DNA of 63,852 nt, filler included, from Polymyxa betae A26-41 (lineage: Eukaryota; Protista; Endomyxa: Phytomyxea): NCBI GenBank assembly GCA_003693705.1. It is 4 parts of 4 records of this genome, joined end to end, with 100 filler letters (N's around TTAATTAATTAA, not from the genome) between each part and the next. Parts side by side here need not be neighbours in the genome. Positions count along the whole stretch, not along the records: positions 1 to 27,739 come from RBZT01000353.1; 3 more parts are not named here. The stretch is one strand, 5' to 3'. Below the pieces are notes generated by a model. The model did not search any database and was not told the DNA's origin. It saw only the letters and a list, made by a program, of their open reading frames with translations. Of this stretch, positions 15,005 through 22,177 are shown one piece after another. Made by a program: the position numbers and the translations under genes. How positions within the stretch are numbered: the first letter of the stretch is position 1; each line of letters starts with the position of its first letter.

Positions 15005-15863
15005 TTCTGTCACTAAAACACTGAAATTTCAAACTATATTCTAAAAAAGAAATATGCATCATAAGTAACAATGGATCTTCCACTTAATGCAAAAATGAGA
15101 AGCGACGAGCCTCTGTTGAAAAAGACAGAGTCCCTCTTTGTGTGGACGAGAGCAGCTGTTCATGAAATTAACATCACAATCATAATGAAATCGCTGGCCA
15201 TTCGAGCGATGACAGAAAGTACAGACATAACCTCTGCTTGTTGGTTGGAGGCTGATCTGCTTGATCCGTCTCTCTCGTCGGTCATGTCTCCCAAACGATG
15301 GACACAGACAATTAGAGCACAATATAAGAGTAGACTATATATATTAGGTCGCAAAACATCACGACAGGTAAACATGAACTCTCCTAGCCTTCAACAACTG
15401 ACTCGCTATCGCGATACTGGTGGCACAGGAAGACGAGTCGGACCCCAAACCATTCGCACATTCAACACTGCTCTCACAATGAAAAACTTTTGCATCTAGG
15501 ATTGTGCTGCCTCTCATTTTGTTATGAACTCATCAAACAGAAATAGATAGCAAACTGAGTGAGTGGCCTTCGCACAATTAGCGAACTTCCAAAAGTCACT
15601 CCGGGAGACATGAAGTAGTATCCAGATACTATCCAAAGTCGGAATCGTCTGAAATCGCAGAGCTTTGGATGAGATATGTCATCCGTTTCATTCGCATAGT
15701 TGCTGTCTCTCTCTCACACACAATGAGCACTGCTGTATGATCGCAAAGTCTGATAAGGACAATCTTGAGCGACATTTGCATGAAGATGGTGATGTTTCAA
15801 TGGAAGTTTTATAGAGCTGATGATAGCAGCAAATCGCAATGCTTTCGTGTCCATAAATCATTG

Positions 15864-16160
15864 TGTGATGATCACTCTAATGGAAGTCTGCAGACGGCGG
15901 TCAAGCGGAATTGAACCACACTTTTATTTCCAAAAGAATAATAAACAAGGATACATAAACAGGACAGGTCAGGACAGGACAGGACAGGGGCTGCGCGAAC
16001 GACGCTTAATAGAAGCGGCACTTGCGTACAGGACGTGCTGGACCGCTGCTGGTCAAGGCAGCTGTCTTGGAAGGAGCGGCCTCCCGGGCGGGTTGCGCCG
16101 GAGTAGCATCTTCATCCGACTTCGTCAGGTAGGGTTTTAGGGTTTTGATGTGTCACGACA
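15864..16160 (-). repeat. 3' LTR of the gypsy element
   Basis: Direct repeat of 21331-21661 with small indels. Contains (GACAG)n, AATAAA on the - strand at 15923-15928, and TAGGGTTTTAGGG. Confidence 0.95.
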
Positions 16161-18704
16161 TTGCCCTCCCCCAAAGAGGACTGTGGCTGGGAAGAGATAC
16201 GACGCCAGTAACCACGAATGACTTGTTCATCATTGAAGTTGACGCTGGGTTCCCAACTGTCTTCGGCTGCAGGTTGGCCTTTCCATCGAACCAGATTTTC
16301 GCGCTTGGTTTCCGGGCCACGATGACGAACGATGTGGTCGATAACAAAGGAGAGCGGGTCTTGCGACGGATCTTTTGAAACGAGCTTCATCTGAACCGGT
16401 ACGACAGCGCGCTGGTAGAGCTGCAGATCATGATCCAGAAGCTGGTAACTGCCGCCACGAGTATGGCGAAGGACTTTATATCTACCTTCATAGACCGGCT
16501 GGGTCTTGCTTGAACGGGTGGGGTCCACAACCATGACATACGAACCAGCAGGAAAAGGATCTTTTAAAATACGTTTCGAGCGAGCGAACATATTGATGGC
16601 ACGTGACGCGTGGCCGAGAAGACGATCTTCAACGGCCGGGAACAGGATGTCGGTCATAATTGCATTCTTTCACGAACACGAAGGTAAGCTTGCTGAAGTT
16701 CAGCTTCTGGGTACACAGGTTCATTGGAATAATCCTCCAGCAGGTTCAGAAGACGACCGAACAAAACGCTAAAGGGTGCCGATCCGTCAGTAGCAGCGAT
16801 CTTTGCATTCAAGAACATCTGTACCACAGGGACAAAGCGGTCCCATAGACGATCTTCGCCGTCGAGTAACTTATGAATGGCGCGGCATGAAGTCTGCACA
16901 AATCTTTCGGCGAGACCATTGGCTCTGGGGTGATACTTTGTGACTAACCGGTGATCGATGCCTGAGTGCTGCGTCAAATAATTCATCAGCTGGTTGACGA
17001 ATTCTGTGCCATTATCTGACTGGATGATACGAGAAAAACCAAAATCACAAAAGATAAGGAAAATAGCCTCTGCTACGGACGATGCTGACTTATCTTGCAA
17101 CGCCCGAAGTAAAACGAAGCGTATGTGAACGCAGACGACCACCAACAAGACGCTCTTGCCGGCTGTTGAGACAGGGAAGGAAAGAGCGGTGTCTATCGTC
17201 ACATGGTCCATTGGACGAGCGGCTGTTATCGAAGTCAGAGGGTGGAACCCCTGGCGTACAATCGAAAATCTTTGGCAGGGAATACTACGCTTGACAGCTT
17301 CTTCCACGTCACGTCTCATCGACGGCCATCTCTGACCTTGTTGGATAAGGTGTGCCATGGTGGCGGCGACACCGAAGTGTCCTCGCAGATGGGCAGCTTC
17401 AATGGCCTCAGATCGACGATCTTCTGGTAAAGGATCTAGCACACGCGGTTGTAATTCACCATGATGAACCGAAGCGGATGATGTCCAAGCGGATCGCTGA
17501 GGAAAAAGCCTTGAAAGCGTATCCGGTAGAATGTTCAGAATTCCCGGGCGATGAATAATTACGAAATTATAAGAGAGGATCGACTCCATCCAATTCGCCA
17601 ATAAGGGTGAAACGTCCTTTTGCGTGAACAAAAACGACAGAGCTCGATGATCTGAAAACAGTTTGAAATGACGTCCCCATAGATAAAAATGAAAAAGTTT
17701 CAGAGCAAAAACTACCGCCAGTAATTCCTTCTTCGATGCCGAATAGTTGCGCTCGGATGCATGCAACGCTCGAGCTGCGAACATAATGTACAAACGATTC
17801 TCGGTACAGTCGTCCTTTGCTTCATCGCGAAGCTGATAAAGAGCTGCGCCAATTCCGACATCGGATGCGTCAGTGCAACAGAGAAGGTGCGGTCGAAGTT
17901 CGGGAAATGCAGAAACATTCCCTATTGTAAGACGGCCTTGAGGGCTTCGAAAGCTCGGAGTCGATCTTGGGTCCACGACGATTCGTCTAGGTGCGATACT
18001 TTGCGTAAGGACTCCAGCGGTGCCGCGAGCGTCGAATAGCAGGGGATGAAATCCCTGAAATAATTAATCAGTCCCAGATACTTCTCTAGTTCATTGCCAG
18101 ATTGTGGCAGAGCTAACTTGCGACGGTCAATGGTGATGCCGGCCGCGGAGAATGTATGCCCCAGAAGGTGTAATGAGGTCTTGCAGAAGTGAGACTTCTT
18201 GATGTTGACGCGCAGGTTCACCGCCGTTAGACGATCGACGGTATCAATGAGGTCTTCCAGGTGCTCGTCATGCGAATGCGAGCCCACGGGGATATCGTCG
18301 AAAAAGGCGACAGCGCCTAGCGAACCGTCCAGCACACGCCGCATCGTCCGCTGTAGAACCGAAGACGTCGGAATGAAGCCGAAAGGCGTGCCGGCAAACA
18401 TGAGATGACGGCCTGACCAAGTGAAAGCCAACTTCGGTCGATCAGATTCGCTTACGGGCAGCTGAAGAAAGGATTGCTCGAGATCGATAGCGCTGAATAC
18501 TGACTTTCCGGCCAGGAACTGGAAAATCTCTGAGACCAGAGGAAGCGGGTAGCAGTCAGGCTTGAGAAGCCAATTGAGAGCACGGGGATCTATACAGACC
18601 CGTCCGGGTTTCTTCTCGCCTGTTTCCGGGTCTTTTTTGAGAGCCACCAATAGAGGAAGGTTCCATCTGCAGCTTCGCGGGGCATCAACGACCTTGCCGT
18701 TATC
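16112..18704 (-). pseudogene. RT-RNase H-integrase-chromodomain of the gypsy element, frameshifted
   Basis: ORF pieces 17922-18917, 16654-17976 and 16112-16657 carry the pol motifs in gypsy order. Confidence 0.9.
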
Positions 18705-18709
18705 ACTCC

Positions 18710-19159
18710 TGTCATGCCAGGCCATGACAGTAGTACAGGCATGGACACCTCCCACTGTACAGACGCAGCCTTCCGCCGCGCCACCACGACCCCACTGTAC
18801 GCCACCACCACCTGACTGTACAGGCATGGACACCTCCCACTGTACAGGCGCAGCCTCCGCCGCGCCACCACGACCCCACTGTACGCCACCACCACCTGAC
18901 TGTACAGGCGCAGTCACCGCCGCGCCACCAACTCGGTCATTCTGACCAACACCCTCCTATCGGACGGTCATCGTCTTCGTCTCCGCCGCCTCCGTTGTAT
19001 CCGTCTCACCCGTCTTCTCCGCCGTCTCTGTCGTCTCCGCCTCCTCTGACGTCTCCGTTCTCTCCGTCGCCCCCACCACCGCTGCCATCTCCGTCTCTCT
19101 CCGTCGTCCCTATCGTCTACCGCTCTACAATAAACAGAATTACTTGACCGTTCGTAACA
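18710..19159 (+). mobile_element. Solo LTR of an unrelated element, inserted in the gypsy RT
   Basis: TGTCATG...CGTAACA ends; TSD ACTCC/ACGCC (1 mismatch). Removing it restores QGWRDNGKVVDAP. It contains an internal tandem duplication, a (CGTCTC)-rich tract and AATAAA near the right end. Confidence 0.85.
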
Positions 19160-21298
19160 ACGCCACCCTTGGACTTGCTGATCTACAACGGGTTGGATGG
19201 CCTGGGCGATGGGATACTGGCGACGGTACACTGGTTCATGGTCACCTGTATTGAGCTCGAAGACAGCTTCAGGTAGCGTGCAAAGGCTATTCTTGGGGAT
19301 GGCTTGATTGCGGTCGAGAGCGGCCTGCAAGCTTGGATCGCTGATCAGAGGATTCGGAGTGCCACTATCAACATCGAATCGCGGAAGGTGAGAGTCTTCC
19401 TCGGCATCGGGCGGCAGCTGCAATGCAGCTGGCAGACAGAGACCAGTTATAGCGATCCCGAGCACGCGCTGCAAATCCCGGCCAATGATGACGGAGATCC
19501 GAGACGGCGGTTCCCCGATGTCGAACATATAGCTGAACGACTTGTCTCCATATCGGGCCGGTACAACTGCCTTGCCCGGCCGCCGCACGAACCGGCCTTT
19601 AGCGCCCAACGAGATCATTTCGCCCGGGGCTGCATCTTGGTAAGAGCTTCGCACAGAATCCGAGAATTGCTGAAAGAGAGCTTTGTCAATAGTCGAATGG
19701 GAAGCACCAGTATCCACATATCCATCAACTTCGATACCGTCGAGGAGTATAGGCGTAAAGATGGCGGTTGAGTAGTCGACGCGAGCCGTACTGGTCACGG
19801 GCAGCGACGAGCTCCGTCCACCAGTCGAGGCAGATTCGTTGCTGTGAGTGCAGGCCGACGATGAGAAGAGCTGATCATAGCCTTCGACAGTCTTGACCTC
19901 CGCGGGCCAATCAGAGCTCGGATCCATCTGATCGACGTGATGGTTGGCTGCAGCCGCGGTCGTCCGATTTTGGGCCGCTGCTGGTAGTGGATTTGGGCAG
20001 AGCGACGCTATGTGGCCCATTGCATGGCAGCGATGGCACTTAACATTGGCTAACATAGATCTGGAAGCATTCGTACCTTTTGACTGAGTCATGGAGGTTG
20101 CAGAAGTCGTGGATGAGGATGGTTGAGCTTTTGAAGACGTGTTATCAGCCGTCTTGGGAGCCAAGGCTCGGCATTCGGCGGTAGAATGGCCACCCTGACC
20201 ATAAAGTTCGCACTGCTTCTGTTCGCGGCGCTTGATTTGAGACGCTTTGGAGGATAAGGAAGTTTGGTTAGTCGCAGACGACCCCGCCTGCGGTTGGCGT
20301 GAACGAGCAGATCGTTCAGCGGAACAGTACAACATGAGCTGTGATATGATCTTTCGGACAGTGTCAACACGATCCGGAGAACTGGCCTTAATACAGTTCA
20401 ACCAGTGTACAGCCATCTTGGGAAGATGCGACGTAAACAGGGCTGTAAACTCGCCGACCTTGTCTGGCTTACGACGAGCCCGCCTCATAGCCGTTAGATA
20501 TCGGTCACCGAAGGCCAGAAGATCTTCGCCCTGATTACGATGGCATTGAACAAGAGCTTGTTCATAAAGGTGCGGCACGTCGTCATCGACGAAGTGTTGG
20601 ATGAAACTGGTGCGGATCTCCTCCCACGGAAGACCCCTCCCAACCAGGTTTTCGCTGACCCAATCTCCCTCGGCCGTATCGCAGCAGGCCGCGAGAGCTT
20701 CCGGATACATTGAAACCGGATAGTTGTCAGCTCGAAGTCGTCGAACGAACTCTGAAAATAAATCGTCGACAGCGCCAGGCTCCTGAGCACTGGGGCGCTT
20801 GAATCGTGGCAGACCCGACGGGAGCCTTGCCGAGTACGACGGCGTCGACGGCGCCGCCGTCGTCATAACGGTGACAGGCTGAGGAACGACAGGAGAAGTC
20901 GATATCGCTTGCGGTTCCGGCAAGTGGGAAAGTACGGCTTCCTGCGATGGACGTGGCCGTTTCAGAAACGCCAACGACCGTTCAGTTGCTGTAATTCGCT
21001 CTTGAGCGGCAGCGACTCGTTCAGCCAGCGCCCGAACCTGGGTGTCGAATGCAGTCTTGGCTGTTCTTGACATCGATTCCGTGTCCGTCTGGAGCAGCTC
21101 GTCTTGTTCAGCCTCCAAACTCAGCAGAGCGTCTTCTTCGCGCTCGAGACGACTCTCGATCTGGGCGATGAGTTGAGATCTGCGATGCGATCGTTCCACA
21201 GGGGCGGGTATGTCGATGCCTGCCTGATCCTGGGACCCAGATTGACGGCGTTCGTTTTCAGGCGGGGCCTGTGTGCCGTCTTCTCCCGAATTGCTCAT
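19160..21298 (-). CDS. Gag-protease-start of RT of the gypsy element
   Basis: Long open frame from ATG 21298 with coiled coil, two Zn-knuckle-like motifs and DTG protease, up to VDQQVQGW where the solo LTR interrupts it. Confidence 0.9.
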
Positions 21299-21330
21299 AG
21301 CAAGCGTGGATCGGGACTCGCTTGAAAAAA

Positions 21331-21661
21331 TGTGATGATAACTCTAATGGAAATCTGCAGACGGCGGTCAATCGGAATTGAACCACACTTTTATTTCCAA
21401 AAGAATAATAAACAAGGACACATAAACAGGACAGGTCAGGACAGGACAGGACAGGGGCTGCGCGAACGACGCTTAATAGAAGCGGCACTTGCGTACAGGA
21501 CGTGCTGGACCGCTGCTGGTCAAAGCAGCTGTCTTGGAAGGAGCGGCCTCCGGGCGGGTTGCGCCGGAGTAGCATCTTCATCTGTTTTGAGAGGCTGCGC
21601 CTCTCCGACTTCGTCAGGTAGGGTTTTAGGGATTAGGGTTTTGATGTCGTGTGTCACGACA
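21331..21661 (-). repeat. 5' LTR of the gypsy element
   Basis: TGTGATG...CACGACA. On the - strand it is followed by TTTTTTCAAGCG and then the gag ATG at 21298. Confidence 0.95.
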
Positions 21662-22177
21662 CATTGGTAACTGTACATTCACTGTTTTTCAAGAATATGT
21701 TCAAGAATGGCTCAGAGTGGGCCGAAACCCATCCTGGGCATAGTAGCCTCCAGAAGGTCATCATCAAAGACGAAAATCTCGATTTCGTCTGATTCTCGAC
21801 TAGATTTATGAAGATCGTGGTCGAGATTTCAGTGTCAATGCTTTAATGCAGATATTGATAACTTGCGATCGGTATCAGTGTCCAGGGCATCGTATCAGTT
21901 GCCAAAGTCTTGCTCAGATGCATCCCAATAGTTTTGATCTTCTCCGAGTTGTCTTTGAATCTCGTCTTCACGTAGCATTTTGCTGTAAGTTTGCCGCTTG
22001 GGCCATTCGTCAACCTAATTTTTATGAATCAATGATGTACGGGACAGCTATAGCTTCTCGGTGATACTGGAATTCTGACTATGGTCCTTAGAAATCTGAA
22101 TGGGGAATGCAAATGGTTGCTTTTTATCTATCAGCTGCGATCTATCTATCAATCAAGCGATTGCAATGGCTGTAGGG

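Follow-up and report, generated by a model that had tools for sequence, protein, structure and literature searches.

A thymine tract and covarying core beside the 5′ long terminal repeat of a chromovirus clade, a candidate binding site for the elements' own polyadenylated RNA end

Introduction

Minus-strand DNA synthesis in long terminal repeat (LTR) retrotransposons is, in the textbook account, primed by a transfer RNA (tRNA), by a half-tRNA, or by a self-primer of the Tf1 type taken from the 5′-terminal stretch of the element's transcript, and the mode of minus-strand priming is a defining trait of these elements. Here we describe a decayed Ty3/gypsy chromovirus of Polymyxa betae A26-41 (15864–21661, minus strand) in which the sequence directly past the 5′ LTR, rather than resembling a tRNA-type primer-binding site, consists of a T tract and a short core complementary to the predicted polyadenylation junction of the element's own transcript. 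The element lies in a stretch of 63,852 nucleotides, filler included, that joins four parts of assembly GCA_003693705.1 and is referred to throughout as the window; positions 1 to 27,739 correspond to record RBZT01000353.1.

The closest described systems are found among other chromoviruses. In Tf1 and its relatives, self-priming makes use of the RNA's first 11 nt within a three-helix structure (bioRxiv 10.1101/2022.12.06.519325; PMC7175516), and plant elements of the Tcn1 clade are predicted to self-prime under a rule that asks for an LTR complement of at least 10 bp (PMC6317226). Novikova et al. assigned an element of B. dendrobatidis to the Tcn1 clade, and reported that SM-Tcn1 of Selaginella has neither a tRNA site nor a self-priming site but a conserved thymine-rich sequence between the LTR and gag, the mechanism being called unclear (PMC2864245). 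Spaller et al. found that Skipper of Dictyostelium has a polypyrimidine tract in place of a primer-binding site and no complementary LTR region (PMC5006619). A preliminary description of the Polymyxa element had cautioned that T-rich sites of related Skipper-like elements might already be on record; T-rich tracts past the 5′ LTR of some chromoviruses have stood unexplained for 10–15 years (PMC2864245, PMC5006619).

The elements described here resemble Tf1 and the sushi elements in being chromoviruses that lack a tRNA primer and carry a post-LTR sequence complementary to their own LTR-derived RNA. They differ in the part of the RNA concerned: Tf1 primes with the 11 nt that open its RNA, at the start of the repeated region (R), and has no T tract, whereas in the T-run elements the complement is to what is predicted to be the final 5–10 nt of R together with A residues added without a template, at a poly(A)-cleavage distance from AATAAA. 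With SM-Tcn1 and Skipper they share a T-rich or pyrimidine tract directly past the 5′ LTR of a chromovirus, without a tRNA match, of the kind called unexplained in those reports (PMC2864245, PMC5006619); the difference, as judged from the published descriptions only, is that no complementary LTR sequence is reported there, whereas here the core covaries with the LTR. There is also a likeness to the target-primed reverse transcription of L1-type elements, in which cDNA synthesis begins from pairing between a poly(A) tail and a T tract, although in that case T-rich nicked target DNA is the primer and RNA the template, and here the A tail would prime on a U tract in the RNA template. Finally, tRNA-primed Ty3/gypsy elements share the overall genome plan and have their site at the same place beside U5 (the unique segment that ends the LTR), but the T-run elements have no TGG and no tRNA complement there. 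A full-text literature search found no paper describing a primer-binding site complementary to a poly(A) junction, with older work, such as that on Tcn1, lying outside its reach, such that an earlier description is possible.

Results

A candidate primer-binding site beside the 5′ LTR

The 5′ LTR of the window element ends in ACA and the leader continues as TTTTTTCAAGCG; there is no TGG and no tRNA-type primer-binding site. In its place a T6 tract (21330–21325) directly abuts the LTR-terminal CA and is followed by the core CAAGCG (21324–21319), the two together forming the candidate primer-binding site (21319–21330, minus strand). In the 3′ LTR, a candidate poly(A) signal, AATAAA (15923–15928, minus strand), is followed by CGCTTGA (15901–15907, minus strand), which ends 22 nt after the hexamer and is predicted to supply the last templated bases of the RNA (i.e. 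the end of R, with cleavage after the A at 15901). The window thus has both features expected of a site for the poly(A) junction, a run of T5–T8 that starts 0–2 nt past the LTR-terminal CA and is outside the LTR, and a core complementary to an LTR sequence that ends in A 10–30 nt past a poly(A)-signal hexamer, although the genomic match between leader and LTR is 7 nt only. The preliminary description had drawn attention to the TTTTTT and CAAGCG of the leader, without TGG, and to the spacing of AATAAA and CGCTTGA, and on reading the sequence the coordinates that it gave for both proved correct.

In the 5′ LTR, where AATAAA lies at 21390–21395 (minus strand), the corresponding site reads CGATTGA (21368–21374, minus strand), the single mismatch that had been raised as a caveat at the outset. 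It results from a private C-to-A change at 21372: the A is absent from the other 25 LTR copies found in the genome, and CGCTTGA is intact in 20 of the 26. The larger block in which the site is embedded, GGTTCAATTCCGCTTGACC (15899–15917 and 21366–21384, minus strand), is kept in 26 LTRs of the genome, some of them only ~70–80% identical overall, against 0 in the control.

The leader is kept in only three copies in this genome, those of the window and of two further loci, C854 and C390. The C854 leader is ACA followed by TTATTTTCAAGCG, and that of C390 is ATA followed by TTGTTCAAGCG, with TGCTTGA as its LTR site. Three copies are too few and too similar for covariation to be tested within the genome. 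A retrocopy joining the R end to an A run was looked for in this genome and not found, and among metagenome contigs there was no transcript-like contig with a poly(A) end at the site.

Covariation of the core with the LTR

Relatives were collected by searching proteins with the open pol from C854 and by look-ups of the contigs that encode the matches, and further ones by a single scan of metagenome contigs with a pol alignment. The resulting set of 25 T-run elements includes the sister copy C854 as a stand-in for the window's own family; the sources also include Batrachochytrium salamandrivorans, Rhizopus delemar and soil metagenome contigs, and proteins of the two named species are the nearest named pol relatives in the protein search, a kinship that by itself would make an early-diverging fungus the probable host. 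Pol identity of the T-run relatives to the query ranges from 31 to 54%.

All 25 elements have the same arrangement, in which the LTR-terminal CA is followed by 0–2 nt, by T5–T8 (T4 in the decayed C854), and by a core of 4–9 bases. In all 25 the core is the exact reverse complement of a site in the same LTR, and this site ends in A. The LTR site lies 21–104 nt from the LTR end, mostly 36–58 nt, this interval being U5. Its sequence varies greatly, with 21 distinct sites among the 25 elements. For example, CGCTTGA is matched by a T run and CAAGCG, CGACTGA by T7 and CAGTCG, CGATA by T8 and ATCG, TGCTTA by T8 and AAGCA, AATCCA by T7 and GGATT, GAATAGA by T6 and CTATTC, and TCCAGCTTGA by T7 and CAAGCTGGA. 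The B. salamandrivorans element pairs CGCTTA with T7 and AAGCG, that of Rhizopus delemar RA 99-880 (LTRs 99.85% identical) pairs TAACAGTA with T6 and ACTGTTA, and one from a Joint Genome Institute (JGI) genome (LTRs 100% identical) pairs TCGTTA with T8 and AACGA.

Compensatory changes are seen between elements that are close on the pol tree: L110 has CGTTGA with CAACG and L116 has CCTTGA with CAAGG, and likewise L098 has TGCTTA with AAGCA and L099 has CGCTTA with AAGCG. When all sense-strand CA+T6 places in the fetched loci were considered, an anchored complement of at least 6 nt was present within the 110 nt upstream of 18 of 74, as compared with 0 of 74 when the core was reversed and 3 of 67 when the antisense strand was used. 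The preliminary description had suggested asking whether the bases past the T tract covary across families with the LTR bases past AATAAA, and they clearly do, all 21 site sequences of the 25 elements being perfectly complementary to their cores. A single 7-nt match, such as that of the window, could be chance; the same anchored match in the relatives is, from these comparisons, not chance.

Two of the elements, L183 (Rhizopus delemar CH476733.1, ~3.416–3.423 Mb) and L184 (JGI 3300066330), have LTRs that are 99.85–100% identical and long open polyprotein frames, together with a T-run site. These near-identical LTRs and long open frames suggest that the T-run system was recently active, as it appears to have been in both of these genomes.

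T-run elements form a group apart from tRNA-primed relatives

A maximum-likelihood tree of the core from reverse transcriptase to integrase was built with 25 rows, elements with an incomplete 5′ boundary or an incomplete pol core being left out. The 19 T-run elements in this tree fall on one side of a branch with 99% support in the Shimodaira–Hasegawa-like approximate likelihood ratio test (SH-aLRT), apart from six elements with tRNA sites. Where pol identity to the query is 25–31%, the elements have tRNA sites of the usual kind past the LTR (e.g. TGGCGCCGTTGCCGGGG, TGGTGACCC and TGGCGTAGCC), and the outgroup relatives carry sites beginning TGGCGCC or TGGTGACC. Taken with the recurrence of matching pairs, the tree indicates a trait that covaries and is shared across a clade of fungal chromoviruses, namely a T run and core that complement the predicted junction of R end and poly(A).

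Four of the distant relatives, L138, L139, L141 and L151 (metagenome contigs, ~25% pol identity), have the site TGGCGCCGTTGCCGGGG in common, 3 nt past the LTR, and the elements L156–L182 have TGGTGACC in common. Both groups serve as positive controls for the calling of LTR boundaries.

Which RNA end the LTR site represents

The LTR site could in principle mark either end of the transcript. AATAAA is the canonical poly(A) signal, and AATACA and AATATA are two common variants of it. In 20 of the 25 elements one of these hexamers ends 14–26 nt before the last A of the site, against a background of 12% at other A positions in the same LTR stretches (binomial P ~2e-14, a generous figure as the elements are related). 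No element has an A run after the LTR site, which leaves a non-templated tail as the sole possible partner of the T tract. With a tail of eight A residues the predicted duplex is continuous over 12–17 bp with a mean of −14.8 kcal/mol, a length comparable to the 11 bp of Tf1 or to a tRNA site; with the genomic continuation in place of the tail it is 5–10 bp with a mean of −10.0 kcal/mol.

The position of the T tract with respect to the LTR bears on the same question. In the window element and in C854, L099, L100, L112, L183 and L184, the 3′ LTR stops at the same CA, with flanking DNA beyond it, and thus the T tract is outside the LTR. A primer that annealed to the core only would have the T tract copied into both LTRs, and since the 3′ LTRs lack it the primer 3′ end should sit on the T tract. 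A caveat to this argument is that Tf1 integrase may trim longer tails.

The strongest competing explanation is self-priming of the Tf1 type, in which the LTR site would be the transcription start, the RNA 5′ end would fold onto the core, the hexamer would be a TATA box, and the T tract would be a spacer with another role. The elements are chromoviruses, and self-priming by the 5′ end is reported or predicted for the related Tf1/sushi and Tcn1 groups (PMC6317226, PMC7175516, bioRxiv 10.1101/2022.12.06.519325); moreover, complementarity between LTR and leader is the hallmark of that mechanism. Several features do not fit, however. Without the T tract the duplex is short (5–10 bp, and 7 nt in the window) when set against the 11 bp of Tf1 and the minimum of 10 bp used in published screens, and a T tract of 5–8, which has nothing in the LTR to pair with, is kept across the clade. 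Hexamer and site begin 13–26 nt apart, a short interval for a TATA box and a transcription start, and the hexamers are AATAAA, AATACA or AATATA, not TATAAA. Two elements, L116 and L118, have separate boxes further upstream (TATATAAG and TATAAATA) that correspond to a TATA box. If the hexamer is a poly(A) signal, then start and cleavage would coincide and no R would be left, and there is in addition the T tract that a core-only primer should have placed in both LTRs. We therefore regard 5′ self-priming as unlikely, and the sequence evidence favors the 3′ end of the RNA as the identity of the LTR site.

Search for other primers and for a leader hairpin

A cellular RNA whose end matched the leader site would speak for a different primer, as the preliminary description recognized. 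None was found: ARAGORN identified no tRNA gene within the window, no Rfam family matched across the element, and a genome search with the reverse complement of the leader gave nothing above control level apart from copies of the element.

The LTR sequence GGTTCAATTCC has the look of a tRNA T arm, but with no ARAGORN or Rfam match, and with other families lacking it, this was treated as coincidence. Similarly, the conserved block GGTTCAATTCCGCTTGACC resembles a T arm with an acceptor strand, although neither ARAGORN nor Rfam finds a tRNA and other families do not have the block; the likeness is probably a coincidence, or else reflects the context of the cleavage signal.

A second CGCTTG (21301–21306, minus strand) is present just before the gag ATG (21298), as had been noted, and pairing of this sequence with CAAGCG had been put forward as a switch between hairpin and primer. 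This hairpin is absent from the lowest-energy fold of the window leader, and leader folding places the core mostly in paired form in only five of the 25 leaders; the second CGCTTG is thus not supported as a conserved structure. A further candidate helix, between GYGTGG in the LTR and CCACGC in the leader, was dropped as it fails by eye in C390 and L094.

A proposed route from the polyadenylated end

We consider it probable, from the comparative evidence, that the T tract and core are the minus-strand primer-binding site, with the element's own RNA acting as primer through its polyadenylated 3′ end. This reading, priming from the junction of genome and poly(A), was that of the preliminary description, and the covariation lends it support, as does the spacing of the poly(A) signal, seen in 20 of the 25 elements. 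In the route that we infer, cleavage of the transcript would follow the A that ends CGCTTGA, at a distance of 22 nt from the AAUAAA of the LTR, and an A tail would be added. The last 5–10 templated bases and the first 5–8 A residues could then pair with U(5–8) and the core beside U5 to give a duplex of 12–17 bp, the partner being the same RNA molecule, one packaged with it, or a short R-poly(A) transcript made from an LTR, among which the data do not distinguish. A 3′-OH next to U5 might be provided by a short oligo(A) tail, or by trimming in which, as in Tf1, the element's RNase H makes a cut; in the Tf1/sushi group, RNase H cleavage of an RNA:RNA duplex is a known way to make a primer end. 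Reverse transcriptase would then copy U5 and R, and strand transfers would presumably follow. Just as the retroviral plus strand copies the end of the tRNA primer, the plus strand here would copy the primer, such that the T tract and core are rewritten in each cycle and the complementarity of LTR site and binding site is kept. Such rewriting from the RNA 3′ end would explain both the perfect complementarity and the readiness with which the two sites covary.

A number of points weigh against this proposal. A poly(A) tail of full length would project unpaired beyond the duplex at its 3′ end, and therefore either the short oligo(A) tail or the RNase H-type cut must be assumed. Five of the 25 elements have no recognizable hexamer, the T tract is broken up in two of the three copies in the Polymyxa genome (TTATTTT and TTGTT, both in decayed copies), and the 25 elements are related, such that the counts are not fully independent events. 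The only runs in which the element was found, two low-coverage contig sets, consist of scattered pieces resembling genomic DNA, without ends or tails. Finally, the authors of the Skipper study, while proposing a novel form of self-priming, judged a simple poly(A) stretch to be unlikely for that element (PMC5006619).

Pairing of the two sites might also serve a purpose other than priming. The poly(A) junction could bind the leader so as to circularize or dimerize the RNA, for packaging or for the first strand transfer, with another molecule acting as primer. Covariation is evidence of pairing and not of priming as such, and bridging of the 5′ and 3′ ends is known for Ty3, through its bipartite tRNA site. 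Bridging of this sort is also known for human immunodeficiency virus type 1 (PMC1976439). In the T-run elements, however, the paired tract starts 0–2 nt from the LTR-terminal CA, which is where a primer 3′ end must sit, and the leader offers no other candidate site, either as TGG or as a tRNA complement, and we regard a purely structural pairing as unlikely, to about the same degree as 5′ self-priming. That the resemblance is due to chance, or that a host RNA with an A-rich 3′ end is the primer, is very improbable and is already contradicted by the covariation, as the seven matching genomic bases and the 5′ LTR mismatch that would allow it in the window alone stand against 21 different pairs of site and core, each complementary to the element's own LTR, a reversed-core control of 0 of 74, and a leader with no genomic match beyond element copies.

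Structure and decay of the Polymyxa element

The window element is an old, decayed Ty3/gypsy chromovirus, delimited by its LTR pair and a 5-bp target duplication. Both LTRs begin with TG and end with CA, the 5′ LTR being 331 nt (21331–21661, minus strand) and the 3′ LTR 297 nt (15864–16160, minus strand). The target-site duplication CAATG was read directly on both sides, upstream at 21662–21666 and downstream at 15859–15863 (minus strand), where it directly adjoins the 3′ LTR. A polypurine tract, GGGGGAGGG (16164–16172, minus strand), was likewise read directly and lies 3 nt before the 3′ LTR.

The coding content is split over four open reading frames (ORFs) in differing frames. The first long ORF, in the gag region, begins with the ATG at 21298 and encodes 776 amino acids (18968–21298, minus strand), for which there is no Pfam match. 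The broken pol occupies 16112–18917 (minus strand), with a reverse transcriptase part (17922–18917), an RNase H and integrase part (16654–17976) and a chromodomain part (16112–16657), all on the minus strand. The Pfam matches follow the order RVT_1, RT_RNaseH, Integrase_H2C2, rve and Chromo, which is that of a chromovirus, with the frames broken. Near the junction of the first ORF and the reverse transcriptase ORF there is a 66-nt direct repeat (18772–18837 and 18856–18921), the copies of which are 92% identical and 84 nt apart, and which adds a proline/threonine-rich duplication.

The LTR pair is 97% identical over the last 224 nt and 88% overall, with insertions and deletions (indels). The start of U3 (the unique segment that opens the LTR) contains telomere-like repeats (AACCCTAATCCCTAAAACCCTA) at 21619–21640 in the 5′ LTR and at ~16127–16149 in the 3′ LTR (minus strand), with small indels between the two, and the U3 of the 5′ LTR has ~34 extra nt (in the region of 21585–21610, including GAGAGGCGCAGCCTCTCAAAACA) without a counterpart in the 3′ LTR. 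Since insertion the pair has thus diverged by indels, and the window copy is a dead relic of the proposed priming system. In the genome as a whole (27 Mb, 1001 contigs), at least 100 scored matches to the RNase H–integrase region and 296 first-look candidates were obtained, many with stop codons; the gypsy load of this 27-Mb genome is large and mostly decayed.

Discussion

The recurrence of the T run and its matching core in 25 elements points, on comparative grounds, to a so far undescribed start of reverse transcription. With somewhat less assurance than for the primer-binding site itself, we lean towards the broader view that a whole old clade of fungal chromoviruses, found in chytrids, Mucoromycota and many uncultured soil forms, starts reverse transcription from its own polyadenylated 3′ end. 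Annotation tools that seek tRNA sites or LTR complements of at least 10 bp miss T-run sites, and if the proposal is correct a rule that combines a T run with a complement of the R end could join LTR-element annotation. Priming of this kind would then be a third kind for LTR elements, beside priming by tRNA and 5′ self-priming, and may likewise account for the T-rich sites found where Tcn1-like and Skipper elements have no recognizable primer-binding site. For the elements themselves, the choice of poly(A) site would be tied directly to replication, and every cycle would renew the binding site from the tail.

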